Positions 36,686-62,312 of a stretch of DNA of 64,000 bases are shown here, one piece after another. Below the pieces are notes generated by a model, which had not been told where the DNA came from, did no database searches, and was given only the letters and a program-made list of their open reading frames with translations. The first letter of the stretch is position 1. Each line of letters begins with the position of its first letter. A program made the translations under genes and the position numbers. The stretch spans positions 124,001 through 188,000 of the IMG/VR virus record IMGVR_UViG_3300035698_029839. One strand, given 5' to 3'.

Positions 36686-37633
36686 ATGAGTAATGGTAAT
36701 ATTCCAGTTATTAGTATCAGTGCAAAAACCATCCCTGAGGCATGGGAAAGGGCGGTTTTGGCAGTTTGGAGTCAGGGCACGAAAGTGAAAACGCAGTATG
36801 ATAAGCCAGAAGATCCACCAAGTAGAGATGCTACAGTAATGGTATCTGTGGAAGATCCCTTTGCTGAGCCAAGAATTCATAAGAATTTTCCTGGGGGACC
36901 AGCAGAATTAGAATCATATAGGCAAGAAGTGGTAAATGGTATTCATGACCATTGGATAGATCCCGAGAATGATAAATGGACATATACTTACCATGAAAGA
37001 CTATTTAACTATTCTCCTTGTGTAGATTTGAGTAAATCAGACTCTTTACGACCTTTTATTCCTGTTGATCAGATACAGTATATTATAGATTATTTAGCTA
37101 AATCGGGTCACACAAGACGAGCACAGGCTATTACTTGGCAACCTACATGTGATCCACAGACATATGATCCACCATGCTTACAGAGGGTCTGGTGTCGTAT
37201 GATGGAAGATGAGGAAGGTAATCCTGTTTTGAATATGAATACACACTGGAGATCTCGTTGTCTCTATAAGGCTTGGTTTATGAATGCATATGCTATGACT
37301 GATCTTCAAAGATTTATGGCCGAAAAAATAAGTGAAAAAATAGAAAAAACTGTAAAAGTAGGAAGATATATGGATATAAGTGATTCTTTACATCTTTATG
37401 GTAGTTATTTTGGTGAAATTGAGCCAGAAGTTAAGAAAATGAAAGAAAATCCTATATGTCTTGACTGTTCTTTAGAATATAATGAATGTACAGCAGATTA
37501 TATAGAATCTATAAGAAACAATTTAACGCAAAGGACTTATAATACAACAGATACTGCTTTTAAGATGATGACAGATGAAGCAAAAGAAAATCTTAAAAGA
37601 AATCCTGATTATTATAGCGAAGGCGATAAATGA
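36686..37633 (+). CDS. thymidylate synthase-family enzyme (archaeal-like)
   Basis: YTYHERL, RRA, DPPCLQ, RS, N, SLHLY. Confidence 0.85.
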   Translation: MSNGNIPVISISAKTIPEAWERAVLAVWSQGTKVKTQYDKPEDPPSRDATVMVSVEDPFAEPRIHKNFPGGPAELESYRQEVVNGIHDHWIDPENDKWTYTYHERLFNYSPCVDLSKSDSLRPFIPVDQIQYIIDYLAKSGHTRRAQAITWQPTCDPQTYDPPCLQRVWCRMMEDEEGNPVLNMNTHWRSRCLYKAWFMNAYAMTDLQRFMAEKISEKIEKTVKVGRYMDISDSLHLYGSYFGEIEPEVKKMKENPICLDCSLEYNECTADYIESIRNNLTQRTYNTTDTAFKMMTDEAKENLKRNPDYYSEGDK

Positions 37634-37932
37634 TAGATTTTATAGATGAAAAATATGGAAGAGTTGTAATATATGATATAGGAGAACTTGGAGAAATACC
37701 AACTGGAGAATCTATAATAGATGCTATTATGGTGAAAAAACTATCACAATTATCAGAGGCTAGTGTTGTAGGATATAGAAATCTTAAAAAAAGAAAAGTA
37801 AAGATATTAAAAAATAGATATGCTTCGATTGAAGATTATGAAACTGAGCAGTTTGTTCTTAACTATGGCGTAAAAAAAGAAAAAGAAGTATATGATCCTA
37901 TAAAAACGAGATTTGAGATATTAGACTTATGA
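37630..37932 (+). CDS. hypothetical protein ending RFEILDL
   Basis: ATGA-coupled ORF with shared tail. Confidence 0.65.
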   Translation: MIDFIDEKYGRVVIYDIGELGEIPTGESIIDAIMVKKLSQLSEASVVGYRNLKKRKVKILKNRYASIEDYETEQFVLNYGVKKEKEVYDPIKTRFEILDL

Positions 37933-38201
37933 AATATAAAGTAGGCGATAGAATAAAAATAAAAGAAGAAAATTCATTTATAAATGAGTGTAGGGATCTT
38001 CTTGAATCAGTAAATCCTCCTTATGTTCTTACTATAATAGAAGCCTGCGATAAGTATGATAGAAATGACGGTTATTGTGGTGAAAGATATAAAGTAAAAG
38101 AAAATGGACAGTGGAACTGGTATACAGACAATATAGAAGGTTTGTATAAAGAAGAAGTATTTGATCCTATAGAATCAAGATTGGATATTTTAGACTTATG
38201 A
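37929..38201 (+). CDS. KOW/SH3-like small protein ending RLDILDL
   Basis: MKYKVGDRIKI start; shared tail. Confidence 0.65.
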   Translation: MKYKVGDRIKIKEENSFINECRDLLESVNPPYVLTIIEACDKYDRNDGYCGERYKVKENGQWNWYTDNIEGLYKEEVFDPIESRLDILDL

Positions 38202-38351
38202 GTGAGGCAAATTATAGAACTGTAGAATGTTGTAAAAATTGCAAGTGGTGGGATGATGGCTTTGGCGATTATAAATCAACTTGTATCAAATATATTTTTG
38301 AGTCTTATCTCAGTGATAGTATTTGCGATAATTATAAATCAAGGTTTTTAA

Positions 38352-38699
38352 ATGAATAGTGATATAGCTGATAGATTTGATTTATTAATATTTGAAGATG
38401 CTCAACAAATGTTCGACAGAAGAGCAAACGAAGCAGAAAGTAGAAAGAAAAAACTTGCAAAAATAGAGGGAATAGGTTATTGTGAAGGTTTTGAAGGAAG
38501 ATGTGAAGGTGTCGAAGAGGGATGTGAAAATACAGAAAGTGTAAAATGGACACCTTCTAGGACTTTTTATCCTTGGAATATTGATAAAGATCCATTAGAA
38601 GATCCGAATAGGGATATATTCCTATGTGATTGTTGTGAAATAAGATATAACGAATACTGGAATGAAACGTGGAAAGAGTATAATGCAGGAAGATTATGA
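38352..38699 (+). CDS. Cys-rich protein starting DRFDLLIFEDA
   Basis: Related to 38712 ORF. Confidence 0.6.
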   Translation: MNSDIADRFDLLIFEDAQQMFDRRANEAESRKKKLAKIEGIGYCEGFEGRCEGVEEGCENTESVKWTPSRTFYPWNIDKDPLEDPNRDIFLCDCCEIRYNEYWNETWKEYNAGRL

Positions 38700-38711
38700 G
38701 ATATTAGATTT

Positions 38712-39173
38712 ATGATTTATAACGATATGACAGATAGATTTGATCTTTTAATTTTTGAAGATGCAGAAGAATATATTAAAAGAAAAAAGAAAGAGAAAAG
38801 AGAAAAAAAGAAAAAAGACAAAGAAGATAATAGAGAAATGGCAATCAAAGGAGTATGCGAAGGTTGCGAAGAGAAAAAAGAAAATTTAAGATGGGTTAGG
38901 AATCATGAGTATTATTCTTGTTATGACTGTTTCATACATGACTTACAATGTGAATCAAGCGTAATGGTCCCATCTAGGTCATGTGATCAGCTTGAAGATT
39001 ATATGAGCGAAGGTGTTTGGGACGAACTGTGTGAGGCAGATAGGTACAGAAGATATTGTGATATTTGTGAGTGGAGTAGTTTTAATTTTGAAGATGAATA
39101 TTATTGTGAGCATTGGAATGGGTTAGTAGAAGAAATAATAGTATGTGAAAAATGTTATGAGAAAAGGAAATAA
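38712..39173 (+). CDS. Cys-rich protein starting DRFDLLIFEDA
   Basis: Multiple CxxC. Confidence 0.6.
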   Translation: MIYNDMTDRFDLLIFEDAEEYIKRKKKEKREKKKKDKEDNREMAIKGVCEGCEEKKENLRWVRNHEYYSCYDCFIHDLQCESSVMVPSRSCDQLEDYMSEGVWDELCEADRYRRYCDICEWSSFNFEDEYYCEHWNGLVEEIIVCEKCYEKRK

Positions 39174-39765
39174 AATGACAAAATATGAAAAAAAACAAAA
39201 AGAAGCAGCATTAATAATTTCAAGTATTAGTATAATAGTAGGTATTATAGCTTTATGTATAGGTCAATTTGGTTTGGTTTTTATTGGCTTGGTTCTTATT
39301 TGTGGTTTTTACGATATAGAAATAATACTAAAGAAAATTGAAAAAATAATGAAAGAAAAAGAATTAAAATGAAATATGAATATATTCATTTTGTAGAAAT
39401 AGAACAAAAACCTAGAACAAAAGTTTATTCTTGTAGAAATAATAAAAGTAAAGAAGAACTAGGTTTGGTTAAATGGTTTCCTAGTTGGAGACAATATTGT
39501 TTTTATCCCATTGCTAATATAATTCTTAGCAAAGGGTGTTTAAAAGATATACAAAATTTTATGGAGCAATTGTAATGGTTTTAATAAAAAAATCAGTGAG
39601 TAATGTCCCTACATTAAAAGAGTTAATACTGTGTCTTTCTCCTGAAGGAAGAAAAAAAGTATTGGAACTTGTTCAGAATACTCAAGCAGATATGGGCGAT
39701 TGTAATGGCATAATAGAAATAGAATCTCAATATTTTGCAATTGAAGAAGAAATAAAGAAATATAT

Positions 39766-40785
39766 ATGTGGTTAACAAGAAAACAATTTAGAGAAGGAGT
39801 ATTTAAGAGAGATAACAATCTATGTGTTATCTGCGAAGAATTTGCGGACGCAGCTCATCATATTCTGGAGAGAAAATTGTGGGGAGAATCTCAAGGATAT
39901 ACATTAAATAATGGTGCTTCCTTGTGCCCTAAACATCATATAGAAGCAGAACAAACAGTTTTAAGTTGTGAAGAGATAAGAGAAGATGCAGGAATAACAG
40001 AAGTTATATTACCTGAACATCTATATAAAGATAATACTTATGATAAATGGAGTAATATTATACTTCCTGATGGCAGAAGAGTTAAAGGGGAATTATTCTT
40101 TGACGAATCTGTTCAGAAAATATTGAAAGATGGAGGAGTTTTAGGAGAATTTTGTAAATATATAAAGTATCCGAGAACGATGCATTTATCTTTTAGTCAA
40201 AAAGTTACAGATGATGATAGAATATTGAAAAATGAAGATCAATTTCTGAATAAGAGAGTAATTATTAGTGAAAAACTTGATGGAGAATCATCTTCTTTGT
40301 ATAATGACTACATGCATGCTCGTTCCATTGACGGTCAAAATCATATTTCAAGAAATTGGTTAAAGAATTTTCATAGCAAAATGGGATATAATATTCCTGA
40401 AGAATGGAGAGTGTGTGGTGAAAATATGTTTGCTAAACATACTGTTTATTATGAAAATTTAGAAACTTATTTTTATGTATTTTCAATATGGAATGAAAGA
40501 AATGAGTGTTTAAGCTGGAGTGATACTATAATATGGGCAGAGCTTTTAGAACTTAATTTAGTTCCTGTTTTGTTTGATGGGATTTGGAACGAGGAAATAA
40601 TAAAAGAATTTTGTAAAGACGATAAGAGAGAAGGTTTTGTGGTTAGGATCGCAGATAGTTTTTCTTATGGAGATTTTAGAAAATCTATAGCAAAATTTGT
40701 TAATCCTAAATTTAAAAATAAGTTAAAAGAAGAGGACACTTATCACTGGAGGTATAGTGCTATTACTCCAAATAAGCTAAAATAG
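39766..40785 (+). CDS. HNH domain fused to ATP-dependent RNA ligase
   Basis: RD...CVIC..HHI..NGASLCPKHH; KYPRT.HL, EKLDGE, GE, EGFVVR, AKFV. Confidence 0.85.
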   Translation: MWLTRKQFREGVFKRDNNLCVICEEFADAAHHILERKLWGESQGYTLNNGASLCPKHHIEAEQTVLSCEEIREDAGITEVILPEHLYKDNTYDKWSNIILPDGRRVKGELFFDESVQKILKDGGVLGEFCKYIKYPRTMHLSFSQKVTDDDRILKNEDQFLNKRVIISEKLDGESSSLYNDYMHARSIDGQNHISRNWLKNFHSKMGYNIPEEWRVCGENMFAKHTVYYENLETYFYVFSIWNERNECLSWSDTIIWAELLELNLVPVLFDGIWNEEIIKEFCKDDKREGFVVRIADSFSYGDFRKSIAKFVNPKFKNKLKEEDTYHWRYSAITPNKLK

Positions 40786-41320
40786 AAAAGGTAGTCTGTA
40801 TAGGGGCTTATGCCAATAAATCAAGGCAAAATGATTAAAGTAATTATGGAATTGGAGTTAGTATTTCCTTATAGGTTATCAATGGGGGTGTTGGTGGAAT
40901 TTTGTTATTTGTGGGATACTCTTCTTGTTAAGGGTGGAACAAAGAAATTAAAATCTATTATTTCTATGCCTGGTCATCATTTTAAAAAGATTTTTGGGAC
41001 TAATCCTAGAGAAAGAGAATTTTCTATTCCCAGTGGTATGGAAAAATTTATAAGTAAAATAACAGTTAAAAAGATATTGATTAAAGGAGAGTAAGATTTT
41101 TATTATTTTAGAGGAGTATGGAGTGTTTATAATAATGATATTGACTATAAATCATATCATTATTCAGGAAGAATAGATAAGAGAAATGGCAATTTAAATA
41201 AAGATACTTATATTGTAAAAATATATAAAATAAAAAGTATAAAAAAATTAAGAAAAAAAGCATTTTTTAATATAAAGGAATCTTTGAATGATTAATTTGC
41301 AAGGAGATAATAAAATAGTT

Positions 41321-41893
41321 ATGGGGAGTAAAAAGAATAATGGCCTTCGTTGTGCTTTGGATCTTGATGGGTGCATCGCGTACTGGGAAAAATCTGCAGC
41401 AAGAACTTGCGATATTGATTATGAGGATAAGGAGATAAGAGAAGCTATTAAAAATGGTAAAAGATTAGAGAAATTTGTAGGTGGAGATCCGAAGATGTGG
41501 AAAATGATCGATGCTGAAGGTGAGAAGTGGTGGGAGAATCTCGAGAAACTTCCATGGGCAGATGATCTTATTGAACTCCTAAAGGCAGAAACAAAAGATT
41601 TCTTTTTCTTAAGCTCTCCTTCTAAAAGCCCTATTTGTTATTCAGGAAAAATAAAATGGGTATTGAAAAACTATCCTAAAATGGATAGGAATCTATTCCT
41701 TGGGTGTAAGAAACATCTTTTTGCTAATCCTAATATTCTCCTAGTAGATGATACCGAAAAGAAAGTTAAAGAGTTTAGAGAGTATGGAGGACATGTTTTT
41801 AAATGGCCTTGTCCTCTCAGTATCATAGATGGAGATGTTGAGATAGAAGATGTTTTTCAGGATCTTAAAGATTATATAAAAGAAATAAAATGA
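41321..41893 (+). CDS. HAD 5'(3')-deoxyribonucleotidase-like
   Basis: DLDG, LSSP, GK..W, LVDD; ATG 41321 after AGGAG. Confidence 0.8.
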   Translation: MGSKKNNGLRCALDLDGCIAYWEKSAARTCDIDYEDKEIREAIKNGKRLEKFVGGDPKMWKMIDAEGEKWWENLEKLPWADDLIELLKAETKDFFFLSSPSKSPICYSGKIKWVLKNYPKMDRNLFLGCKKHLFANPNILLVDDTEKKVKEFREYGGHVFKWPCPLSIIDGDVEIEDVFQDLKDYIKEIK

Positions 41894-42198
41894 AATATGT
41901 AATTACTGGAAAATCGGATTCTTATTGGATTTATCTTAAGAATAATCAATATCATAATGGGGAACAAACAGTACACGCTCGAACAAAAAAGAGATTTGAT
42001 GAAATTGCAGAAAATGATACTATAGTGTTGCTAAATGGTTGGTGGGCCAGGAGTTGGGCAATAGATGCTATTAAAGAAATAACTAAGGCATATCCTACAA
42101 TCACTTTCGAATATCTCGATGGTCCATTTGGTGAAATTGAAAGAAAAAATTTGAAAAGTGAAAACATATCGAATAGATTTGATATATTAGATTTGTAA
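41890..42198 (+). CDS. hypothetical protein ending RFDILDL
   Basis: Shared tail. Confidence 0.65.
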   Translation: MKYVITGKSDSYWIYLKNNQYHNGEQTVHARTKKRFDEIAENDTIVLLNGWWARSWAIDAIKEITKAYPTITFEYLDGPFGEIERKNLKSENISNRFDILDL

Positions 42199-42212
42199 AT
42201 TTTTGAGTATGA

Positions 42213-42593
42213 ATGGCAAAAATAGATCCAAGATATGATAATGCAACAATCACCATTGGTGAAGACGGGCTTGAAAGAGTTACAGACTTTCAATTTATAG
42301 AAACTCATTTTGCTTCAGCATCTGCGCCTCCTCTGGTTTCCGTACCTGAAGAATTACCATCTTCTATATGTCCAGTTTGTGGAAGTCCTGATATTCAAAT
42401 AGTTAATGGTCATGGTTCTTGTAATGACTGCCAATCAGAAATGACCTACAGTGTAGAACTTACTTGTTCAACTTTGGCAGATATGGGTATTAGTAATCCA
42501 TGTGGTGAGATAAAAAAAGAAATACCTCCTGTTAAAAAATACAAAGATATAGTAAGTGATATAAATGACAGGTTTAAAATTTTAGATTTGTGA
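42213..42593 (+). CDS. zinc-ribbon protein ending RFKILDL
   Basis: CPVC..CNDC; shared tail. Confidence 0.65.
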   Translation: MAKIDPRYDNATITIGEDGLERVTDFQFIETHFASASAPPLVSVPEELPSSICPVCGSPDIQIVNGHGSCNDCQSEMTYSVELTCSTLADMGISNPCGEIKKEIPPVKKYKDIVSDINDRFKILDL

Positions 42594-42602
42594 GGTAATA
42601 AA

Positions 42603-42962
42603 ATGATAATAGCAATTATTCCATTAATACCAGTAGCATATGCTGCAGGAGGATTAGTTCTTGGGGGAGTTACTGGGTGGTTGAGAGGGAAGAGAAAAAA
42701 GAAAAAAGAACAAAAATTCCAAGAAGAGATATTAAAAGAGTTGCAGACTATAAAGAAAACACAAAAAAAACAAGAAAAAGATATTAAAGAAGTTAAAGAT
42801 AATACAGCAGTAGAGGAAGATGATGAGGAATTAGATAATACTCCCGTTCCTCTGCCTACTAGTTCTGTTCCAGACAAAGTTTTAAACAAAGTAAAAAAAT
42901 CTAAAAAAGACGATATTATTGAATGTGGTGGGGATGAAAGATTTGATATATTGGATCTTTAG
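42603..42962 (+). CDS. membrane-anchored protein ending RFDILDL
   Basis: Hydrophobic N-terminus, basic stretch, shared tail. Confidence 0.65.
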   Translation: MIIAIIPLIPVAYAAGGLVLGGVTGWLRGKRKKKKEQKFQEEILKELQTIKKTQKKQEKDIKEVKDNTAVEEDDEELDNTPVPLPTSSVPDKVLNKVKKSKKDDIIECGGDERFDILDL

Positions 42963-42988
42963 AATTGATATTATAAGGAGAATTAAAA

Positions 42989-43312
42989 ATGTTAAAAGAG
43001 CTTACTGATGCTAATTTTCAACAGGAAGTCACAGAAGAAGCAGGCGTTATTCTTGTTGATTTTTATGCTCAATGGTGTGTACCTTGTAAAGCTATGACTA
43101 AAGCGGTAGAAGAATTAGATAATGAAGGTAATGGGAATGCTAAGATATGTAAGGCAGATATAGAAGAGAACAGCTCGGCTGTAAAAGATTTAAATATCAG
43201 TAGCGTTCCTTTTGTTGTCCTATATAAAGATGGGAAGATCGTTAATAAACATGTTGGACTTCGTTCCAAGCAGGACTTGCAGAAAGATATAGAAAAGGCT
43301 TGCAATGGATAA
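42989..43312 (+). CDS. trxA: thioredoxin
   Basis: VDFYAQWCVPCK, SVP. Confidence 0.9.
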   Translation: MLKELTDANFQQEVTEEAGVILVDFYAQWCVPCKAMTKAVEELDNEGNGNAKICKADIEENSSAVKDLNISSVPFVVLYKDGKIVNKHVGLRSKQDLQKDIEKACNG

Positions 43313-44583: not shown

Positions 44584-44670
44584 TTTTTATACTTCAAAAG
44601 TGAAAGTAAATAATGTATATAGTATATAATCGAGTGAAAAAGAAATTAAGTTTAATTTAGGAGTTAAGTA

Positions 44671-45123
44671 ATGTCAGATTTTAATAGGGTTTTTTTGATC
44701 GGGAATTTCGCACAAGATCCAGAGCTAAAAGATATTGGTAGCAGCAATAAGGTAGCTAATTTTGTTATTGCTAGTAATAGAAATTGGACTGGGCCTGAAG
44801 GCGAGAAGGCAGAAGAAGTTTCATTTATTGATTGTGTCTCTTACGGAAAACGAGCCGAAACAATTGCTCAGTATTTTTCAAAAGGAAGAAAAATATTTAT
44901 TGAAGGCCGTTTGAAACAAGAGAAATGGATTGATAAGGAAACTAAAAAGTCACAAAGTAGGATCAGGGTCATTGTTGAAAGTTTTAATTTTATGGATAGC
45001 AAAAAAGAAAATGGTACTTGTAGTAGTACTTGTCCAGCAACAGGAGCTATTCCTGTGGTAGCAGGTAATGATATACCTATTGTTGATGCACCTGCTAAAG
45101 ACGGTGATTTCGAGATTATTTAG
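44671..45123 (+). CDS. ssb: single-stranded DNA-binding protein
   Basis: NRVFLIGN..DPE, KG..IFIEGRL, acidic tail DGDFEII. Confidence 0.93.
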   Translation: MSDFNRVFLIGNFAQDPELKDIGSSNKVANFVIASNRNWTGPEGEKAEEVSFIDCVSYGKRAETIAQYFSKGRKIFIEGRLKQEKWIDKETKKSQSRIRVIVESFNFMDSKKENGTCSSTCPATGAIPVVAGNDIPIVDAPAKDGDFEII

Positions 45124-45140
45124 ATGAAAGTTTTTTCATT

Positions 45141-54503: not shown

Positions 54504-55009
54504 ATTGATTATGATTAAGGTTAATGTTTTATATAATTTCTACTATCGTAGATTAAGGAGTTGTGATGTCTTATAGGTTTTAGTAAATTAAAATTTTATT
54601 AGGAGATCATAACATGAGTAAAACTTGTAGAAGATCTATGATGTACATGGATTGTAATTGTGGAGCGCTAGTTCGTCCTCGTCAGAGCTGGAACAATGGC
54701 AAATGGTGCGGAAGTGTTCAGGAAGAGATTAATATCTCAAAAAGAAGAGAAAGTCCACCAGATAGAGAATGTCGTTGCGAACAAAAAATAGATTATTATT
54801 CCAAAAGAAATAGTAAAAGAGATCGTAAGAATCCATGGAGACCTGATAAAGCTTTTAAAGATGTTAGTAGAAAACTTTTTAAAGCACAAGTAAGAAATGC
54901 AATGAACCAAAGAAGATACGATTGCATGCCTATTATTAAAAAAACTAATATCTGGGATTGGAATTAAATGATAAATGTCGAGATAGTAACCTAGTATTTC
55001 CTTTCATGG

Positions 55010-55050
55010 AACCTCTCATTTTTAGTAATTGCGAAATGAGAGGTTTTTTT
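55010..55050 (+). terminator. intrinsic terminator
   Basis: AACCTCTCATTT/AAATGAGAGGTT plus T-run. Confidence 0.75.
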
Positions 55051-55062
55051 CGCAGAAAATAC

Positions 55063-55090
55063 TTGAAAGTGAAAGTGTGTATGGTATAAT
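55063..55090 (+). promoter_or_regulatory. sigma70-type promoter with AGTGAAA box
   Basis: TTGAAA-16nt-TATAAT. Confidence 0.75.
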
Positions 55091-55109
55091 GCTTTCGAAA
55101 GTTATTAAG

Positions 55110-55661
55110 ATGAAGAATATCCAATTAACAGAGAAACAACAAAAATTAATTACAGATAACTATAGGTTATTATGGAGTTTCATACATAAGACTATTGAGA
55201 ACGGAGAGGTTCCTAAGCATTTAGAAGATGATTTTATTAGCGATATGTTTTTTAAGTTTTGTTTGTCAGCCTTAAAATTTAGTGAGGAATCAGGTTTTAA
55301 ATTTTCTACTTATGCGTATGGAGGTTTTAAATTCGGACTTCATAATATTTTAATGTATAAAAAAAACAAGTTTGGAAGATTATATTATTTTGAAAATATT
55401 GATGAGTACAAATTAAAATATAAAAAAATAGATAAATTAGAAAGTGATTCTTTACATAAATTTATTGATGATGTAGATTTAGATCAAAGAGATAAGTCTA
55501 TAATAAAAGATTATTCTTATGAAGGATTGACTTTTAAAGATATAGGACAAAAACTCAATATGAGTGCTGAGGCTGTTCGGATGAGATTTAAAAAATCTTT
55601 GAAAAAAATTAAGCGTGTTGCTAGTCTAAAAAGATTGAAGTTTGAAGATTTTTATAAATAA
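55110..55661 (+). CDS. sigma70-family factor
   Basis: KFSTYAY region 2; TFKDIGQKLNMSAEAVR region 4; start moved downstream of promoter. Confidence 0.8.
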   Translation: MKNIQLTEKQQKLITDNYRLLWSFIHKTIENGEVPKHLEDDFISDMFFKFCLSALKFSEESGFKFSTYAYGGFKFGLHNILMYKKNKFGRLYYFENIDEYKLKYKKIDKLESDSLHKFIDDVDLDQRDKSIIKDYSYEGLTFKDIGQKLNMSAEAVRMRFKKSLKKIKRVASLKRLKFEDFYK

Positions 55662-55674
55662 GTGAAGGAACAAA

Positions 55675-56247
55675 ATGAAGCAAAAAATACTTAAATCAGA
55701 GAAGATAACAGATCAGTTGTGGATCAACCTGTTCAAAGTCAAGTACCTCAACTCCAAAGATAAAGTATGTAATTGGATTTTTGCGTCCAGAAAAAAAGAT
55801 CCATTTAAAGATAAAAAGGTAGATGCGGTAGTTATTGTTGCTACCGTTGATACTCCTGAAGGACGAAAATTAGCAGTAACAAAAGAGTATCGAGCACCAA
55901 TTCATGATTATGAATATGGATTTCCTGCTGGTCTAATAGATGAAGGAATGACAATAGACGAAACGGTAGAGAAAGAATTAAAAGAAGAAACAGGCTTAGA
56001 TCTGATTAGGATTATAGATAAGAGCGGCTCTGTGTATTCTTCTGCTGGGCTATCTGATGAAGCAGTAGTTATAGTATTTGTAGAAGCAAAAGGAGAAATT
56101 AGCGTAAAACATCAAGAAGACACTGAAGATATAGAAATTTTTCTTTATGATATAAATGATATTAATGATTTATTAACCTCTAATAAAAAAATAGGGGCAA
56201 AAGGTTGGGGTGTTTTGTATTATTATTCTAAAATAGGTAAAATATAA
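55675..56247 (+). CDS. Nudix hydrolase (ADP-ribose pyrophosphatase-like)
   Basis: PAGLIDEG.......KELKEETG, SSAGLSDE. Confidence 0.9.
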   Translation: MKQKILKSEKITDQLWINLFKVKYLNSKDKVCNWIFASRKKDPFKDKKVDAVVIVATVDTPEGRKLAVTKEYRAPIHDYEYGFPAGLIDEGMTIDETVEKELKEETGLDLIRIIDKSGSVYSSAGLSDEAVVIVFVEAKGEISVKHQEDTEDIEIFLYDINDINDLLTSNKKIGAKGWGVLYYYSKIGKI

Positions 56248-56969
56248 TGAAGGAAGATAGACAAGATGTTAAATACACTTTTGAACAGGTGGAAAATATA
56301 CTGTACAAACAAGCTCATAAAGTTCATGAAGTATGGCCTAATAAATATGAAGTAGATGAATTAGTTAATGAAGTATGGCTCAAAGGTGATATACAAAAAC
56401 TCAATAATATTAAATTTGTCTCTAGTAGAGCATATTGGGATATGATAGATTATATAAGAATTTCTGAAGGTAGAGATTTGATTAGAAAAAGTGGAATAAT
56501 TAAAAGACCTAAATATATAAACAATATGCATGATATTCTGCACGATAGGGAAAGCTCTAGCAGAAAAGGTTATGATTTTTTTGACGATATAGAATCAAAA
56601 GAACAAGATATTTCAAAATTTATTGATAATAAAGATGAAATTGATTATTTGCTTAAATGCTTGCCTAAGAAAAAACGTATAATACTAGAAAAATATTTTT
56701 TAGAAGGTATGAGTCTGACAGAAGTAGGAGAAATATTGGGGCTTAAAGATGTAACTGTTTGCAATTTTAAAAGAATGGCTATAGAAAGAATTAGAAAATA
56801 TAATAATATTAAGCCGATAAATTCAAAGATATTGAGAATTATTAATACTCCTAAAAAACAAGTTCTTCCTTTAGAAGAAGTTTTACCAGAATATGTAGTC
56901 GATTATGAAATAGATAATGAATGCGCATTAGAAGAAGATATAGACCTGATAGAGAAAACTTTATTATAG
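56247..56969 (+). CDS. sigma70-family factor (FliA/ECF-like)
   Basis: DELVNE, MIDYIR, LP......MSLTEVGEILG....V. Confidence 0.75.
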   Translation: MKEDRQDVKYTFEQVENILYKQAHKVHEVWPNKYEVDELVNEVWLKGDIQKLNNIKFVSSRAYWDMIDYIRISEGRDLIRKSGIIKRPKYINNMHDILHDRESSSRKGYDFFDDIESKEQDISKFIDNKDEIDYLLKCLPKKKRIILEKYFLEGMSLTEVGEILGLKDVTVCNFKRMAIERIRKYNNIKPINSKILRIINTPKKQVLPLEEVLPEYVVDYEIDNECALEEDIDLIEKTLL

Positions 56970-57184
56970 AATAGGAGTTATTATGTTTGAAACAATTTTA
57001 TTAATTATTATTGGTGTAATTTTATTTATGTTTGTCGTGTCATTAATGTTAAGTCTTAGTCCAGATTTTTTACTATGGGGAGCAGGAAAAGATAATCCTA
57101 AATGGAAAGAAGAATATGACAAACACCTTTCTGATTTTTTAAGGTTAAAACGTCAAGGTAATTCTACTGATTGGGGAGTGTAAA

Positions 57185-57457
57185 ATACCTACTTACGATT
57201 ATAAATGTGCTTCTTGTAACCATAAATTTGAACTTATGCAGGGCATAAATGACCTTGTTAAGAAGAAGTGCCCTAAGTGCAAAAAGATGAAACTACAAAG
57301 ATTAATAGGTTCGGGTTCAGCAGTGCTTTTTAAAGGACCTGGATTCTATGCTACTGATTACAGATCTGAAAATTATAAAAAGAGCACAGAGAAAAAGCCC
57401 GTTTTTAGTAATAAAACAATTAAAAAAGGACCTGCTAAAACACAAAGAGAACAGTGA
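57185..57457 (+). CDS. FmdB-family zinc ribbon protein, apparent ATA start
   Basis: PTYDYKCASCNHKFE..CPKC..FKGPGFYATDY. Confidence 0.75.
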   Translation: MPTYDYKCASCNHKFELMQGINDLVKKKCPKCKKMKLQRLIGSGSAVLFKGPGFYATDYRSENYKKSTEKKPVFSNKTIKKGPAKTQREQ

Positions 57458-57545
57458 AAGTGATAAAGTTGTATTTCTTATTGTGATTTTATGTAATCTG
57501 TAAGTCTTTTTCAAATAAGGAGTTAAAATTTTTTATATTTTCTTC

Positions 57546-57573
57546 TTGCAAATAATAGAAATAATTGTATAAT
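57546..57573 (+). promoter_or_regulatory. sigma70-type promoter for the PspA module
   Basis: TTGCAA-16nt-TATAAT. Confidence 0.65.
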
Positions 57574-57624
57574 TACTCTAATGTAAAAATCATATTTTAA
57601 TACTTTAGTTACGGAGATTCAAAA

Positions 57625-58293
57625 ATGAAGAAATGGAAAAGAATTACAATGGCGGCTGTAATGGCATTAGTATTGATGTTTATTTCAGTCGGTGAAGTAG
57701 AAGCAAGAAGAGGTGGTGGGGGTGGTTTTCGAAGTAGCAGTAGACCAAGCAGTAGACCAAGCAGTAGACCAAGCAGAAAATCAACTGCAAAGAAAACAAC
57801 TGCGAAAAAGAGAGCTGCAGCCAAAAGAACAGCTACTGCTCCTAAAAGAACAGCAACACAACAAAAGTCATTTGAGACAGCAAAAAAGAATGGCACAGCT
57901 TATAATAGTAAAACTGCTGCCGTTTCAGCATTCAAAACGAAGAATGCATCAACCTATACTTCTAAGTACACAACGAAACCAACAACTAGGCCTTCTCATG
58001 TTCCGCAGACAACAATGGTAGCAGGTAAAAGTTGTAATGTTTCCTACAATTCTACTATGGGGGGATATGGTTATACAAATTCTTTGGGAACTTGGATGTT
58101 GTATGATGCTATGACAGATGCGGTTATGACGAATAGTCTTATGAGGCGTAATAACTATTACTATGATACATCCCCCGTTGCTATTGCTCGTGCTCCATTT
58201 GGTTATAGTATTATCAAAGTTATTTTCTACCTCGTGATTCTTGTCGTTATTTTTATTGTTGTTGTTGCTCTGTTTAAATCACAGGGAAAGTAA
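57625..58293 (+). CDS. exported Gly/Ser/Lys-rich protein with C-terminal TM helix
   Basis: Signal peptide VEA-RRGGGGGF, SSRP repeats, hydrophobic tail. Confidence 0.7.
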   Translation: MKKWKRITMAAVMALVLMFISVGEVEARRGGGGGFRSSSRPSSRPSSRPSRKSTAKKTTAKKRAAAKRTATAPKRTATQQKSFETAKKNGTAYNSKTAAVSAFKTKNASTYTSKYTTKPTTRPSHVPQTTMVAGKSCNVSYNSTMGGYGYTNSLGTWMLYDAMTDAVMTNSLMRRNNYYYDTSPVAIARAPFGYSIIKVIFYLVILVVIFIVVVALFKSQGK

Positions 58294-58296
58294 CAA

Positions 58297-59004
58297 ATGG
58301 ATACAACTGACAAAGAAAAATTAGCTTATTGGGAAGATGTCCAAGTAGGAGATTTAATACAACTTTCTGATGAACAGACTATCTCTTATTTGATGGAAAA
58401 CCTTTGTAAGAATATAGATCACGGAGCAGATTTCGAAGTTAAAAGAATACGAAAAATTACTGCTCAGAATAGTTCTGCTCTTTGGTTTCTATTCGATATC
58501 TCTTTTTCCAATTTTATGTGGTTCGTAGTTGTGAAATCTATGGATATCAATCTTGACATAAAAGTTTATTATGCTCCTGATGATTTTGAAACAGGAAATC
58601 GTCAGGATATGATGGACAGTGATTCTCTGTGGCTTTTTGAAAGTCGAGATAATATCGACAGTTCTATTCTTCCTCAACTTGGTTTTGCATCTCAAATTGA
58701 GGAAGGAGAAGATACCGTTTATTGTACAAATGGTTCAGAGTTCGGAGAATGTAAAGAAGGTGATGAAAGATCATTTGCTACAATTACCGAATATATCACG
58801 GAATCAGATGTAGAAAATCCTGAGCTAATGATTGTTGAATTCAATAATGTGGAAGAGTTGTCTGATTCAGAAGAAGATGAAACAGATGATGAGACAGCAG
58901 AACATTCAACAATTCTGGGTGTTAATGTAGACGAAGAAAATAGTTTTATTATTTTTCTCCAAGGTTGTAAAGTAAATCCGAATGATATTAAATTGTTGAA
59001 GTAA
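58297..59004 (+). CDS. acidic protein, YjfK/DUF4178-like by context
   Basis: VGD start, G..V...DI end; position in PspA module. Confidence 0.4.
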   Translation: MDTTDKEKLAYWEDVQVGDLIQLSDEQTISYLMENLCKNIDHGADFEVKRIRKITAQNSSALWFLFDISFSNFMWFVVVKSMDINLDIKVYYAPDDFETGNRQDMMDSDSLWLFESRDNIDSSILPQLGFASQIEEGEDTVYCTNGSEFGECKEGDERSFATITEYITESDVENPELMIVEFNNVEELSDSEEDETDDETAEHSTILGVNVDEENSFIIFLQGCKVNPNDIKLLK

Positions 59005-59041
59005 AAATATTAATGTATTAACGAATTTTAGGAGTTATGTT

Positions 59042-59494
59042 GTGAATGATATTAAAACACTAGTAGATGTAGAACGTATTCTTGCAGAGCAGGGATATAA
59101 GCCACAACTGAATGAGAACAGTGTTGCTGTTCCAGTAGGTAGTGAGAGTGCCCCATTCCCATGTATTATCCTTATGGATGAAACAAATTTGACTATCAGT
59201 TGTGAGATTACAACTTGGGGTCAGATGACAAGCAAAATTACTGATGAGATGAAAGAAGATTTCTTTTTGAGTCTTCTGGATATGAACTCACAAACTCTTC
59301 CTTATGCTTTCAGTGTCCTAACTGATATTGATGGAGAAGGGGATGATAGAGAATCATGGCCTGTCGTGTTGATCGATAGTTTGGCAGTTGGAGATATCTC
59401 ACAGGACGAACTTCTTTCTTCTATGAGAAGTTTGAGTGCGGCTCTTTTAACGGCAAAAAATTTATTCGATGTTAGTCTTGTCGAATCTTTGTAA
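59042..59494 (+). CDS. YjfI/T3SS-chaperone-fold protein
   Basis: LL.MN...P..F, L...L...EL pattern; upstream of PspA. Confidence 0.55.
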   Translation: MNDIKTLVDVERILAEQGYKPQLNENSVAVPVGSESAPFPCIILMDETNLTISCEITTWGQMTSKITDEMKEDFFLSLLDMNSQTLPYAFSVLTDIDGEGDDRESWPVVLIDSLAVGDISQDELLSSMRSLSAALLTAKNLFDVSLVESL

Positions 59495-59532
59495 ACAATA
59501 ACTAATTAATAAGTAAGTAGGAGTGTTAAATT

Positions 59533-60204
59533 ATGGCAAAGTTTTGGAAAATGTTTAAAAACACTGTTCGTGAGAAAAAAGATCAGGCAGCAGAACAGAT
59601 GGCCGATCCCATTCGTGATGGTAAATTTGCTATCGAAGATTCAAAAAAGAAATTGGCTGAGATCCAAGCTAATATTGCAAAGTATTCAGCACAGATCAAA
59701 AAGAATCAACGTCAATTTGATACTGAAATGGCAGACGTGAAGAAATGGACTAATCTTGCGAAACAGGCGGCAGGGGCAGCTAATGAAGAAGATGTCCGTA
59801 AATGTATTACTCAAAAAACTCAGGCTCAGCAAAGAGCAGATAATCTTAAAGGTGTTATTGCCCAAGATGACAAAATGCTTAACAACATGAAGAATCAATG
59901 GCAGCAACATAACAACAAGGTTAGTCAGGCCGAGAGTAACCACTCTCAGTTGGCTGTTCGTAAGCAGATGGCAGAAGCTAGGAAAGAATTTGCCAAATCT
60001 TCTCAGGGTCTGGATTCGGATAATTGTTTTTCGGAGCTGGATAAACTTCAGGAATCAGTAGCATCTGATGAATGTGAAGCTGAGGCACTTGAAGAGTTGG
60101 CTCCTGTAAATGAGATTGAAGATATGTCAACTAAGTACGGTGCTTCTGGAGATTCGGCTGTTGATGACGAAGTGGCTAAGATGTTGGCAAATGCCAAAAA
60201 GTAA
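59533..60204 (+). CDS. PspA/IM30 (ESCRT-III-like) family protein
   Basis: Amphipathic N-helix, DP, W...A..A, coiled coil, VDDE tail. Confidence 0.85.
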   Translation: MAKFWKMFKNTVREKKDQAAEQMADPIRDGKFAIEDSKKKLAEIQANIAKYSAQIKKNQRQFDTEMADVKKWTNLAKQAAGAANEEDVRKCITQKTQAQQRADNLKGVIAQDDKMLNNMKNQWQQHNNKVSQAESNHSQLAVRKQMAEARKEFAKSSQGLDSDNCFSELDKLQESVASDECEAEALEELAPVNEIEDMSTKYGASGDSAVDDEVAKMLANAKK

Positions 60205-60228
60205 TTAGTAGTCTTTTAACTATAATTG

Positions 60229-60272
60229 AAACTTCCTATTGGTGTGGAGATTGCTAATAGGAAGTTTTTTTT
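60229..60272 (+). terminator. intrinsic terminator
   Basis: AAACTTCCTATT/AATAGGAAGTTT plus T-run. Confidence 0.8.
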
Positions 60273-60287
60273 AAAAGGAAAAAGGTA

Positions 60288-61370
60288 ATGAAGAAAATAT
60301 TGATATTTTTAGTTTTGCTTATATCGTGTCAATTATCTTACGCAGAGGACATTGAACGGATAATAAAAATATATGTATCTAATATGAAACCGTGTGTTAT
60401 TATTGAAGATACAGAAAATAGTCACGTCCCTCCTATTATTTCTGGTTTTGAAATAGATCTGTGGAATGAGATAGGAAAAGACTTAAAGGCTCAAAGCATA
60501 ATTAAAAGTTGGGAATTTGTTCCTGTAACTTGGTCCGAATTAGAAAAGAATGTAAGGAATGGAAATGCAGATGTAACTTGTTCGGGTCTAACTATTCGTT
60601 CTAAGAGAATGGAGTGGGCTGATTTTTCTATTCCAACTATGAATTCTGGTTTAGGTATAATGATATTAAAAAATCCTGAAAAAAATTCTTTATTGTTTAA
60701 GTTTCAGGTTCTTTATGATGCTCTTGCAATGCCAGTAACATTGTTTGGATTGTTTGTAATAATCTTTTCTAATATTATATGGATGGCAGAAAAGAAGGGA
60801 GATGGAATTGATACTAAATATTTTCCAGGAATTTTTGAAGCAATATATTTTTGTATTGTAACTTGTTCTACGGTAGGATATGGAGATTATACTCCTAGAA
60901 GATGGACGACTAAAATAGTAACGATAGCACTTATATTCTGTGGTATTATTGCTTTTTGTAATTTCACAGCCTTATTATCTGCTGACTACACCACGGAAAA
61001 AATTTCAGGAGAAATTCAATCTCCACAAGATCTTAAAGGCAAAATAGTTTTAACTCAGATAGGAACAACAAGTGTAGATTACGTTAAGGGGCTAGGAGCA
61101 TCTAAGGTTAAGACTGTTGATGATATAGATAGTGCTTGTGATAATCTACTACTTGAGAGAGGTGATGCTGTAGTATTTGATCATCCTGTTCTTCTCAATT
61201 ATGTGAAAGAGAATCCTGATAAAGTGGAGTTGGTAAATGGTCTTTTCGATGAGCAGTATTATGGGTATGTATTCCCTAAGGGAAGTGATTTAAAGAGAGA
61301 TGTGGATATAGCTATTCTTAAACTCTATGAAGATGGGACTTATAGCAGGCTTTATAAAAAGTGGTTTTAA
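60288..61370 (+). CDS. GluR0-like ligand-gated K+ channel
   Basis: Signal peptide, split solute-binding domain (GFEIDL, TIRSKR, GTTS, DHPVL), M1-P-M2 with TVGYGD. Confidence 0.9.
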   Translation: MKKILIFLVLLISCQLSYAEDIERIIKIYVSNMKPCVIIEDTENSHVPPIISGFEIDLWNEIGKDLKAQSIIKSWEFVPVTWSELEKNVRNGNADVTCSGLTIRSKRMEWADFSIPTMNSGLGIMILKNPEKNSLLFKFQVLYDALAMPVTLFGLFVIIFSNIIWMAEKKGDGIDTKYFPGIFEAIYFCIVTCSTVGYGDYTPRRWTTKIVTIALIFCGIIAFCNFTALLSADYTTEKISGEIQSPQDLKGKIVLTQIGTTSVDYVKGLGASKVKTVDDIDSACDNLLLERGDAVVFDHPVLLNYVKENPDKVELVNGLFDEQYYGYVFPKGSDLKRDVDIAILKLYEDGTYSRLYKKWF

Positions 61371-61377
61371 AAAACAT

Positions 61378-61405
61378 TTGAAAGTGAAAGCATTTGCCCT
61401 ATAAT
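61378..61405 (+). promoter_or_regulatory. sigma70-type promoter with AGTGAAA box
   Basis: TTGAAA-16nt-TATAAT. Confidence 0.75.
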
Positions 61406-61455
61406 ATATAATTAGGTGAAAATATTGCCTTTGATTGTATATTATAGGGTTTTTT

Positions 61456-61758
61456 ATGTCCAAAGAAAATCGTGATGAAATTGAAGAACGTCTTATGAAA
61501 AGATTTGAAGAACTAGATGATATTCCTAACTTAAATTTATCCGAGATGGAAGATACCATAAACAGATTTCTTAAAGAGACTGAAGGACAGTTGGCTCCAG
61601 AAATCATTAAACTTAAAAAAGAAATTAAAAAATTAGAAAAAAACGTTACAAAATGGAGGAATAGTAGTAATAAATTGTTGAAAGAAAATAAAAAATTAAA
61701 GAAAGAACTTAAAGAATATCAAGAATATTATGATCGATTTGATATTTTGGATTTATGA
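61456..61758 (+). CDS. coiled-coil protein ending RFDILDL
   Basis: Likely ATG 61456; shared tail. Confidence 0.65.
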   Translation: MSKENRDEIEERLMKRFEELDDIPNLNLSEMEDTINRFLKETEGQLAPEIIKLKKEIKKLEKNVTKWRNSSNKLLKENKKLKKELKEYQEYYDRFDILDL

Positions 61759-62312
61759 AAAAAGATTTTTGCAAACAATGTGATAGAACTCTTTATAATA
61801 GGTACGGAGGTTTTTGTTCGAGTGCCTGTTGTATAGAGTTTTCTATTAAACATAATATTCTTTTTATAGATGCTATGTCATCTTATGGAGATCAAGAAAT
61901 AGAGAGATTGGAAGATGAAATTGCTCGTTCTGAATGTAATTACTCTGGAGTAGTAGGAGAGTACGGAGATATGGAAAGAATGTTTGATAAAGCTGATATT
62001 AAGATAAATAGTTTAAAAGAAAAAGTGGAAGAGTTAAAAAATATAGATTGGGAGGTAGTAGAAAAAGAAAGATTCGAAGAAGTAAAATTTAATGAAAGTC
62101 TCTTTGCGAAAATGGATAATATTAAAGTAGAGAGAGACGGAATAAAAGAAGAAAATAAGAAAGTTAAAGTAGAAAATAAGAAAGTTAAAGTAGAAAATAT
62201 TCTTATTCATGAGCAAAATTTAGATTTGCTTAAAACTATTAAAGATTTAAAAAGTCATTCTGATCGTTTTAAATTACTGGATCTCGGAATAGAATTGGAT
62301 TACGATGAATAA
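61755..62312 (+). CDS. Cys-motif/coiled-coil protein with subterminal RFKLLDL
   Basis: CKQC..FCSSAC; coiled coil. Confidence 0.6.
   Translation: MKKDFCKQCDRTLYNRYGGFCSSACCIEFSIKHNILFIDAMSSYGDQEIERLEDEIARSECNYSGVVGEYGDMERMFDKADIKINSLKEKVEELKNIDWEVVEKERFEEVKFNESLFAKMDNIKVERDGIKEENKKVKVENKKVKVENILIHEQNLDLLKTIKDLKSHSDRFKLLDLGIELDYDE

Follow-up and report, generated by a model that had tools for sequence, protein, structure and literature searches.

A shared C-terminal tag on otherwise unrelated small proteins of uncultured huge phages

In the T4 family, the clamp-interaction motif LDFLF is found at the C-terminus of DNA polymerase gp43 and in a loop of T4 DNA ligase, has also been proposed for the late-transcription co-activator gp33, and binds the gp45 clamp as an amphipathic helix with a Kd of about 10 µM (PMC6212786). 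Bacterial beta clamps are bound through the motifs Q-L-[S/D]-L-F or Q-L-x-L-x-L, as in QADMF of Pol III alpha and QLVLGL of Pol IV. The C-terminal tip of SSB (D-D-D-I-P-F) is an acidic-hydrophobic peptide on a flexible linker that mediates docking within the replisome. The T4 capsid targeting sequence and the encapsulin cargo-loading peptides are portable short peptides that route unrelated proteins to one destination in a virus or virus-like shell, and the XB peptide of SspB and the ssrA-type degrons are terminal peptides recognised by one machine. Here we describe hundreds of otherwise unrelated small proteins, encoded by a clade of uncultured huge phages, that end in the same peptide, R-F-[D/E]-I-L-D-L. 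The peptide behaves like a portable docking tag for one shared partner, possibly the phage's own DNA sliding clamp. As far as we could search the literature, no description of it was found, in line with the statement of the initial annotation that none was known.

The tail within the window and in related phages

We analysed a stretch of 64,000 nucleotides (the window), which comes from a phage contig of 297.7 kb. The initial annotation listed six ORFs ending exactly in R[FL][DEK]ILDL and a seventh with the motif eight residues before its end. A six-frame regular-expression search and the translations confirmed this observation, which turned out to be much larger than first described. There was no other hit in any frame or strand. 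The ORFs are the following:

37630-37932 (+): tagged ORF 1 (100 aa), tail RFEILDL at 37909-37929, TGA stop overlapping the next ATG; body homologues in the related genome B keep the tail at 31-45% body identity.
37929-38201 (+): tagged ORF 2 (90 aa), a small SH3/Tudor-like beta-barrel body (predicted), tail RLDILDL at 38178-38198; a member of the largest tagged family, of 74 members.
41890-42198 (+): tagged ORF 3 (102 aa), tail RFDILDL at 42175-42195, TAA stop; the orthologue in genome B is 64% identical and has the same tail.
42213-42593 (+): tagged ORF 4 (126 aa), Cys-rich zinc-ribbon-like body, tail RFKILDL at 42570-42590; the orthologue in genome B ends in RFKLLDL.
42603-42962 (+): tagged ORF 5 (119 aa), N-terminal hydrophobic segment and charged linker, tail RFDILDL at 42939-42959, TAG stop; the orthologue in genome B ends in RFEILDL.
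61435-61758 (+): tagged ORF 6 (107 aa from TTG at 61435, 100 aa from ATG at 61456), coiled-coil-like, tail RFDILDL at 61735-61755; a homologue in the related genome C ends in RFDIIDL.
61755-62312 (+): ORF 7 (185 aa), near-terminal tag RFKLLDL at 62265-62285 followed by 8 residues; a homologue in genome C ends exactly in RFKNMDF.

To estimate how often such tails arise by chance, we searched for the back-translated pattern with up to 2 mismatches, which gave 6 hits against 0.10 expected from shuffled sequences, and 0 of 100 shuffles reached 6. The stops of the six ORFs are TGA (four), TAA (one) and TAG (one), and the Arg codons AGA, AGG, CGA and CGT are all seen, as the initial annotation stated. 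Its statement that the bodies are unrelated also holds at the BLAST level. Two of the tagged ORFs are overlapped by longer minus-strand ORFs (41952-42308 and 42446-42889), but the + frames are the real genes, as they tile co-directionally, have tagged orthologues in genome B at 44-64% identity, and are the genes called in an independent assembly (L290).

The contig holds at least 32 such ORFs, and related huge phages (100-550 kb) and metagenome loci hold hundreds more. The same tail ends 88 ORFs in IMG/VR loci of the clade, and within IMG/VR the pattern is nearly confined to this clade. It also ends 350 ORFs in at least 120 metagenome loci. In 830 kb of tag-enriched sampling, 437 of 1647 ORFs were tagged, and the tagged ORFs fall into more than 125 body families. 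The carriers are almost all small: only 1 of 146 proteins of 300 aa or more is tagged. Almost none of them matched Pfam or PHROG families.

Peptide-level selection and portability of the tail

The heptapeptide is the core of a 12-residue C-terminal motif, [ED]-P-I-x-[SND]-R-F-[ED]-I-L-D-L-COOH. In the 88 collected tails R(-7), L(-3) and D(-2) are fixed, although the collecting pattern itself required these three residues, and position -8 is S, N, D or T in 80 of 88, which are the classic helix N-cap residues. Arg at -7 is encoded by all six codons (AGA, AGG, CGT, CGA, CGC and CGG), all three stop codons are used, and third codon positions vary while first and second positions do not. Where body identity is 20-40%, tail identity is 89%. 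These results support selection on the peptide, as the initial annotation had concluded from the synonymous codons, yet codon use in the tail is not neutral. At position -5, GAG:GAA is 192:64 where about 74:182 is expected, TTA is preferred at -1, and TGA makes up 46% of the stops against 24%. Of the tagged genes, 53% overlap the start of the next gene, compared with 35% of untagged small genes, and GAG is most enriched when the next gene overlaps (122:24 against 70:40).

These biases raise the possibility that the conserved element is the nucleic acid, acting as a translation-initiation or coupling cassette for the next gene or as a recombination linker that shuffles gene cassettes, with the peptide as a by-product. 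We consider this very unlikely. Arg switches between the AGR and CGN codon families while the amino acid stays fixed, the three positions fixed by the collecting pattern use synonymous codons freely, and homologues found without that pattern rarely change them. Furthermore, 47% of tagged genes do not overlap the next gene, those next genes have their own Shine-Dalgarno sequences, and lineage variants change amino acids coherently. The nucleotide bias is best read as a secondary layer from translational coupling or copy-and-paste descent.

The tail is appended to the bodies. Tryptophan-repeat homologues in Listeria phage LPJP1 lack it, as do two distant SH3-like homologues outside the clade. 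AlphaFold2 predicts a folded body and a flexible tail; for ORF 2 the pLDDT is about 90 in the body, while the last 10 residues are coil at pLDDT 58, and its Atlas structure hits are SH3-like. Of the motif occurrences, 412 are terminal, 42 lie within 10 residues of the end and 5 are internal, and about 10% of tags in the clade carry 1-10 extra residues, as in ORF 7. It is even less likely that all tagged proteins are diverged paralogues of one ancestral protein, with the tail as the last conserved piece. Many tagged genes do lie in tandem arrays, one family has 74 members, and the shared codon preferences suggest common descent of the tail DNA. However, the bodies range from 41 to 371 aa and have incompatible architectures (SH3-like barrel, zinc ribbons, membrane-anchored, coiled coil, DUF4116 repeats and tryptophan-repeat family), they form more than 125 BLAST clusters, and families that also exist outside the clade lack the tail there.

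Tags on unrelated proteins drift together within a lineage, as expected if they share one receptor. Whole-lineage variants are RFELMDF(EL) in the locus L293, and R[YW]D[FL]I[ED][IV], RF[DE][LI]MD[LIMF] and an Arg-less [FW]DΦ[IL]DΦ[ED] form in L296-L298.

Candidate partners of the tail

The initial annotation read the tail as a portable docking signal that routes diverse cargo to one receptor, with the phage clamp, an AAA+ protease or a packaging/localisation factor as candidates. This interpretation is partly supported, indirectly but by several independent lines. In the view we favour, the motif hangs on a flexible linker behind small folded bodies and docks, probably as a short N-capped amphipathic helix, into a hydrophobic pocket of one shared hub protein, which would tether a large, fast-evolving repertoire of small accessory proteins to that hub. 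If the hub is the phage's own beta-type clamp, the tag would be a clade-specific clamp-interaction motif, and the small proteins would be recruited to, or compete at, replicating phage DNA. Three features of the window bear on this proposal:

14166-15281 (+): clamp-loader ATPase (DnaX-like; Pfam DNA_pol3_delta2, E 3.4e-37, plus the gamma domain III), showing that the phage runs its own clamp system.
16361-17674 (+): phage beta-type sliding clamp (DnaN-like, 437 aa; Pfam DNA_pol3_beta N-terminal domain, E 1.4e-6; 64 clade homologues), the leading candidate receptor (inferred).
36627-36654 (+): sigma-70-like promoter (TTGAAA-16-TATAAT, 11 of 12, a consensus match only) ahead of the operon holding thymidylate synthase and the first tagged pair, with no terminator-like site between it and 38201.

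The clamp as hub gained some support. The DnaN-like protein has a true beta-clamp fold in its AlphaFold2 model (pLDDT 90.8), whose top 50 Foldseek hits are all bacterial beta clamps (E about 1e-22). The phage Pol III alpha ends in ETVDLFA, ESFDIFA or ESIDMFA, a [ST]-Φ-D-Φ-F motif about 30 residues after the HhH domain, which is the position of E. coli QADMF. The tag shares the Φ-D-Φ-[FL] core of this motif, although this resemblance carries little information, and intermediate forms exist, for example ERIDIFSNE. Tagged genes sit inside replication and nucleotide-metabolism operons: tagged arrays lie between the two halves of the split Pol III alpha gene and next to DnaB, RecA, primase, SSB, thymidylate synthase and NT5C. 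On the other hand, the carriers are not recognisable DNA enzymes, and the recognisable ones (topoisomerase I, RNA ligase, methyltransferases, HNH, SSB, RecA and primase) all lack the tag. Thirty or more different small partners per genome is far more than any known bacterial or phage clamp interactome. The polymerase motif (D-[ILM]-F-[AG]) stays constant across lineages while the tags drift, so the two do not co-vary, and the fixed R(-7) and L(-3)-D(-2)-L(-1) differ from the canonical Q-L-[SD]-L-F.

Our analyses thus establish the motif and its excess over chance, selection at the peptide level, portability across unrelated bodies, a near-exclusive C-terminal position, predicted flexibility, concerted drift within lineages, restriction to small proteins, location within replication modules, and the presence of a clamp, a clamp loader and a Pol III alpha with a C-terminal clamp-type motif. 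That the tag binds anything at all, that a single receptor exists and that this receptor is the clamp are inferred. We regard docking to one hub as likely, while the clamp as that hub, and with it the full proposal, is tentative.

Other replisome proteins of these phages have their own distinct, conserved aromatic-acidic C-terminal tails, which hints that tail docking is common in this replisome, and a hub other than the clamp is therefore quite possible. It could be phage- or host-encoded, for example the SSB-tail binding sites, RecA, DnaB, the clamp loader, RNA polymerase or one of the phage sigma factors. The general evidence for docking, the genomic context and the lack of co-variation with the polymerase motif all fit this reading, and the phage SSB ends in DGDFEII or DSDFDAI, which also resembles F-E-I-L. 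However, the SSB tail lacks the fixed R and the LDL, and no specific candidate emerges from the sequences. Mimicry of a host tail is unsupported, as a limited and incomplete scan of bacterial genomes found no lineage whose own proteins carry the tail. The clamp remains the most likely hub, and this reading as a whole is doubtful.

A connection to a protease is somewhat less favoured still. The tag could be a degron that times the removal of early accessory proteins, or a tether like the ClpX-binding peptide of SspB, in which case the small proteins would act as adaptors delivering their bound targets to a host or phage protease. The tag is C-terminal, hydrophobic and on a flexible linker, the body-linker-terminal-peptide layout matches SspB, the carriers are small accessory proteins in early or middle operons, and the phages encode cysteine peptidases (C39-like at 26047-26766, and papain C1 in L290). 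However, no AAA+ protease was seen in the annotated parts, the fixed Arg and Asp are atypical for ssrA-like tags, and known C-terminal degrons need a free non-polar end, whereas the extra residues after some tags are often charged, such as LDIR or LDIRK.

It is unlikely that the tag is a sorting signal that loads the small proteins into the capsid for co-injection or directs them to another phage-made compartment. A portable tag on many unrelated small proteins with a size limit would suit such a role, giant phages package many proteins (PMC10052503), and small anti-defence proteins might benefit from early delivery. Yet every tagged array with annotated neighbours lies in replication or metabolism modules, one of them behind the sigma-70-like promoter, and none was seen next to structural genes. 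The replication enzymes that a DNA compartment would need to import are untagged, and no protease-site signature accompanies the tag.

Comparison with described docking and sorting peptides

Like the T4-family motif, the tag is a phage-encoded short hydrophobic-acidic peptide, usually at the extreme C-terminus and shared by functionally unrelated proteins, which the T4 motif tethers to one hub, as is proposed for the tag, and the Φ-D-Φ-L core of the T4 motif matches F-D-I-L. It differs in its fixed Arg and extra D-L, in its carriers, 30 or more small orphan proteins per genome rather than a handful of enzymes and factors, and in that its putative clamp has a predicted beta-type (DnaN) fold and not that of the gp45/PCNA type; the binding that is measured for T4 is here an inference. 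With the bacterial beta-clamp-binding motif it shares a Φ-[D/E]-Φ-Φ core in a flexible, often C-terminal segment and the presence of a cognate clamp and clamp loader, but Q is replaced by a fixed R and F by L, the trailing D-L is conserved, and the carriers are not replication or repair enzymes. The SSB tip is, like the tag, an acidic-hydrophobic C-terminal peptide on a flexible linker, but in the case of SSB one protein carries the tail and many partners bind it, while here many proteins carry the tail, its free carboxylate is not at a fixed place, and the phage SSB has its own different tail. The T4 capsid targeting sequence is N-terminal and cleaved by the prohead protease, and encapsulin peptides have a different consensus, whereas the tag described here, a possible C-terminal counterpart, is encoded in replication modules and not in head modules. 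The SspB XB peptide and the ssrA-type degrons share with the tag a terminal position on a flexible linker, but have no sequence resemblance to it, and the tag tolerates extra residues after it.

The tagged ORFs and their extent in the clade

We searched the 64 kb window in six frames with the pattern R[FL].[IL]LD[LI] and found it seven times, always on the + strand and in real ORFs. Six of the occurrences are followed at once by a stop codon (TGA in four, TAA in one and TAG in one), and one lies 8 residues from the end of its ORF. The back-translated pattern with up to two mismatches gave 6 hits, compared to 0.10 expected from dinucleotide-preserving shuffles. Longer minus-strand ORFs overlap two of the tagged ORFs, but the + frames are the genes, as they tile co-directionally, have tagged orthologues elsewhere and are the genes called in an independent assembly (L290). 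The observation made in the initial annotation, that ORFs with unrelated bodies end in the same heptapeptide, was confirmed.

The window is 31% G+C, almost everything is coded on the + strand, and the genes identified in it are listed below. Megablast of 25 kb and tblastn of the clamp against 50,697 cultured-phage records found nothing, and there is no cultured relative. Exact look-ups found no record of the window proteins, whereas proteins of genome B, a related huge phage, were on record.

Genes identified in the window
2364-5978: topoisomerase I carrying an intein with a LAGLIDADG homing endonuclease
14166-15281: DnaX-like clamp loader
16361-17674: DnaN-like clamp
26047-26766: C39-like cysteine peptidase
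31555-32688, 35668-36551 (minus strand), 55029-55661 and 56247-56969: a PAS histidine kinase, two response-regulator receiver proteins on the opposite strand, and two sigma-70-family factors
44671-45123: SSB
59533-60204 and 60288-61370: a PspA/IM30 (ESCRT-III-like) homologue next to a GluR0-type ligand-gated potassium channel fused to a solute-binding domain, unusual cargo for a phage
Also in the window: a CCA/poly(A)-polymerase-like enzyme, a GT2 glycosyltransferase, a thymidylate-synthase-like protein, an RNA ligase, NT5C, thioredoxin and DNA methyltransferases

Relatives also have inteins in thymidylate synthase and Pol III alpha, and the clade is rich in inteins and homing endonucleases.

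To estimate how widespread the tag is, we scanned IMG/VR twice with back-translated tails. Both scans hit almost only this clade, in the 297.7 kb source contig (IMGVR_UViG_3300035698_029839), a 350.9 kb contig, a 547.9 kb contig and a few fragments, while other hits are single and lie in non-ORFs. In these loci 88 ORFs of 41-371 aa (median 102) end in R-x-x-[ILM]-L-D-[LI], and at least 32, 31 and 31 distinct tagged ORFs lie in the sampled parts of the three genomes. A metagenome scan with the extended motif yielded at least 120 loci, and these 120 added 350 more tagged ORFs. Over 830 kb of clade DNA, 437 of 1647 ORFs are tagged, including 391 of 1149 ORFs of 60-200 aa but only 1 of 146 proteins of 300 aa or more. 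This sampling is biased towards tags, and the window itself gives about 6%. To examine whether the tail mimics a host tail we scanned 185,579 species genomes with the pattern, in a search of limited depth. Among the hits retrieved there were only scattered single hits and no lineage with many tails. On one Microcoleus sp. N3A4 contig (JAUBRJ010000049.1, 2023-2145) three matches to the tail DNA pattern lie within 120 bp, probably a tandem repeat unrelated to the phage tag.

Anatomy of the tag and the level of selection

The sequence logo is [ED]-P-I-x-[SND]-R-F-[ED]-I-L-D-L-COOH. R(-7), L(-3) and D(-2) are fixed in 88 of 88 collected tails, although the pattern used to collect them required those three residues. 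I(-4) is present in 82 tails, F(-6) in 66 and I(-10) in 63, and position -8 is S, N, D or T, the classic helix N-cap residues, in 80 of 88. Of 459 motif occurrences in called genes, 412 are terminal, 42 are followed by 1-10 residues (often LDIR or LDIRK) and 5 are internal. The motif must therefore be at the chain end, but the free carboxylate is not at a fixed place. For ORF 37929-38201, AlphaFold2 run with a family alignment predicted a confident small beta-barrel body (pLDDT about 90), followed by 18 terminal residues of coil, the last ten of which have pLDDT 58.

Several lines of evidence indicate that selection acts on the peptide. Arg(-7) is encoded by AGA, AGG, CGT, CGA, CGC and CGG, while Ile, Leu and Asp vary at third codon positions and all three stop codons are used. 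Homologous pairs with 20-40% body identity keep 89% tail identity. Of 60 untagged ORFs homologous to tagged bodies, 44 carry near-terminal or variant tags and most of the remaining 16 carry degenerate ones, and thus the tail is rarely lost. Codon use in the tail is nevertheless not neutral: GAG is preferred over GAA at -5, most strongly when the next gene overlaps, TTA is preferred at -1, TGA stops make up 46% against 24% in untagged genes, and 53% of tagged genes overlap the next start against 35% of untagged small genes. In the tail codons of the tagged ORFs (e.g., window 37909-37932, 38178-38201 and 61735-61758), the last Leu codon (TTA) plus a TGA stop forms the ATG of the next gene (TTATGA), and the tail-coding DNA therefore doubles as the translation-initiation region of the downstream gene. 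We read this bias as a secondary layer, caused by ATGA-type translational coupling and possibly by copy-and-paste spread of the tail DNA, and not as the primary constraint. Stalling of the nascent peptide at the stop codon was also considered and set aside, as the register shifts in about 10% of tags and the peptide has no Pro-rich signature.

Portability, drift and genomic context

The bodies that carry the tag fall into 31 BLAST clusters among the first 45 tagged ORFs and 125 clusters among 330 more. We scanned 213 tagged proteins (sets of 88 and 125) against Pfam, and the 88 also against PHROGs. These searches returned almost only unknowns, the exceptions being DUF4116 repeats, DUF551, zinc ribbons and the tryptophan-repeat family, and no polymerase, ligase, nuclease or mismatch-repair domain passed the curated cut-offs. 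The largest family has 74 members, includes window ORF 37929 and is a predicted SH3-like barrel, for which Foldseek gave only weak generic SH3, Tudor and chromo-barrel hits with E above 0.2. A tail-less profile of this family retrieved 32 proteins, of which thirty carry the tail or a variant and two distant ones lack it. Five tagged proteins belong to the tryptophan-repeat family of Firmicute jumbo phages, and their homologues in Listeria phage LPJP1 lack the tail. The LPJP1 paralogues (MZ422438.1, 29703-42457) share a conserved C-terminal stretch of their own (..L.xI[DN]x[LIM][KR]xI), which appears to be family-specific and not a portable tag.

In a 386.5 kb relative that is syntenic with the window (L293), the tags on unrelated proteins all read RFELMEL, RFELMDF(EL), RFEIMDFDD or RFDLIDLE. 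Other lineages have their own forms: R[YW]D[FL]I[ED][IV] with an acidic extension, RF[DE][LI]MD[LIMF](D), and an Arg-less x[FW]D[VIY][IL]D[LVI][ED]. Such a change of tags on unrelated proteins together within a lineage is what a single co-evolving receptor predicts.

The tagged genes sit in co-directional operons with nucleotide-metabolism and replication genes. In the window they follow thymidylate synthase (behind a sigma-70-like promoter) and NT5C, and they precede a methyltransferase. Elsewhere, arrays lie next to DnaB helicase, PRPP synthetase, an NMNAT/CoaE-like enzyme, RecA, primase and a PD-(D/E)XK nuclease, and also between the two halves of a split gene for the replicative Pol III alpha (DnaE-type). 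This split was seen at locus L179 (109-5153) and at loci L294-L300 (in the source genome, L300:3878-10440). The N piece has about 470-480 aa (PHP domain plus the start of the palm) and the C piece 466-819 aa, often with an intein. Two to eight small tagged ORFs sit between the halves, and both halves match overlapping positions of the Pfam palm profile. The recognizable enzymes themselves are untagged, and no array with annotated neighbours lay in a structural module. The large untagged neighbours turned out to be replisome and metabolism genes, with no obvious peptide-binding receptor such as PDZ, TPR or Clp among them.

Candidate receptors and comparison with known docking peptides

Taken together, the tag is real, highly non-random and widespread in an uncultured clade of huge phages, and literature searches for the peptide strings and for phage C-terminal tags found no description of it. 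These statements rest on the sequence analyses, whereas binding of the tag to any protein, the existence of a single receptor and the identity of that receptor are inferred. A C-terminal docking motif for one hub is the best explanation and a likely one. The interpretation in the initial annotation, a portable docking signal routing diverse cargo to one receptor, with the phage's own clamp among the candidates, is thus partly supported. The phage beta clamp is the single most likely hub, but only tentatively so, followed by another replisome or host hub, a link to a protease, and sorting to the virion or a compartment.

The clamp lead rests first on the DnaN-like protein (16361-17674), which was modelled by AlphaFold2 with pLDDT 90.8 and whose top Foldseek hits are all bacterial beta clamps (E about 1e-22, TM 0.7-0.84). 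PDB sequence searches with the clamp and with a 24-residue tail returned nothing useful. Second, the C-terminal piece of Pol III alpha ends about 30 residues after its HhH domain in ETVDLFA (source genome), ESFDIFA, ESIDMFA, ETIDIFG or ESVDMFEDLF, an [ST]-Φ-D-Φ-F motif at the position of QADMF in E. coli. The tag shares the Φ-[DE]-Φ-[LF] core, and forms such as ERIDIFSNE are intermediate. However, the polymerase motif stays constant while the tags drift, and no co-variation between the two was found across 8 lineages. In addition, the carriers are not DNA enzymes and the number of partners would be unprecedented. Other replisome proteins of these phages have their own distinct C-terminal tails: in L294-L301, downstream of the Pol III alpha C piece (e.g., L300:10663-13000), three conserved replisome-module proteins each have a conserved aromatic-acidic tail across lineages, ..[DE]xDF[DF].., ..[IV][GS]W[GDN][ED]I and ..DD[WF]xxN[WF], which suggests a replisome wired by several different tail-docking contacts.

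A more novel possibility, not excluded but less likely than not on present evidence, is that the tag is the address label of a previously unknown phage sorting or hub system. In this view a single receptor other than the clamp gathers 30 to 100 or more fast-evolving small effector proteins per genome, and could load them into the virion, concentrate them in a replication compartment, or couple them as interchangeable target-binding adaptors to one enzyme such as a protease or a transpeptidase-like cysteine peptidase. A large share of huge-phage "dark matter" ORFs would then be members of one functional network. A C-terminal degron of the ssrA type has terminal non-polar residues that are recognized by an AAA+ protease or adaptor, giving a short protein half-life. 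In the annotated parts we saw no AAA+ protease, and the only peptidases found were the C39-like one and a papain C1 peptidase (L290:18473-19456), whose link to the tag is pure speculation. A membrane-targeting helix was set aside because the tag is acidic. A resemblance to the ESCRT-III MIM1 motif (Φ-x-x-R-Φ-x-x-L) was also considered and set aside: a PspA homologue is nearby, but no MIT or Vps4 partner was seen.

Huge phages carry hundreds of small ORFs with no homologues and no functional handle. A single, easily recognized tail of 7-12 residues, which marks about a third of the small ORFs in the sampled regions of this clade, provides such a handle and groups more than 125 orphan families into one functional class. 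It also reveals a new evolutionary pattern, in which one linear motif spreads across unrelated phage genes and drifts in concert within lineages. If the hub is the sliding clamp, this would be by far the largest clamp interactome known outside eukaryotes and would imply that many accessory proteins act on replicating phage DNA. If it is something else, the tag points to an undescribed sorting or adaptor system. The tail could also serve as a tool for tethering cargo to phage machinery.

Compared with docking peptides of other systems, the tag differs from the T4 capsid targeting sequence, an N-terminal peptide removed by the prohead protease on proteins made for the head, in that it is C-terminal and its genes lie in replication or metabolism modules. 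The SSB C-terminal tip is an acidic run ending in a hydrophobic residue whose free carboxylate is bound, while the tag has a fixed Arg and about 10% of tags carry 1-10 extra residues. The phage SSB has a different tail, ending in DGDFEII in the source genome and in DSDFDAI in genome B (L290:12504-12947), an SSB-type acidic-hydrophobic tip that is distinct from the tag but shares F-[ED]-[IA]-I. Bacterial beta-clamp-binding motifs have the consensus Q-L-[S/D]-L-F or Q-L-x-L-x-L and bind the hydrophobic cleft between clamp domains II and III. The tag keeps a Φ-[DE]-Φ-Φ core with R in place of Q and L in place of F in 88 of 88 tails, in a comparison with a consensus that is degenerate in its known members. 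Like these motifs it lies in a terminus, here one predicted to be flexible, and a cognate clamp and clamp loader are present, but its carriers are not recognizable replication or repair proteins. T4 offers a precedent, as LDFLF at the C-terminus of gp43 (EKASLDFLFG), also proposed for gp33, and in a ligase loop binds the gp45 clamp as an amphipathic helix (PMC6212786). The tag, like this tail, is a hydrophobic-acidic motif at the extreme C-terminus that is shared by unrelated phage proteins, whereas the T4 partner is a trimeric gp45/PCNA-type clamp and the only clamp found here is a three-domain DnaN-type protein.
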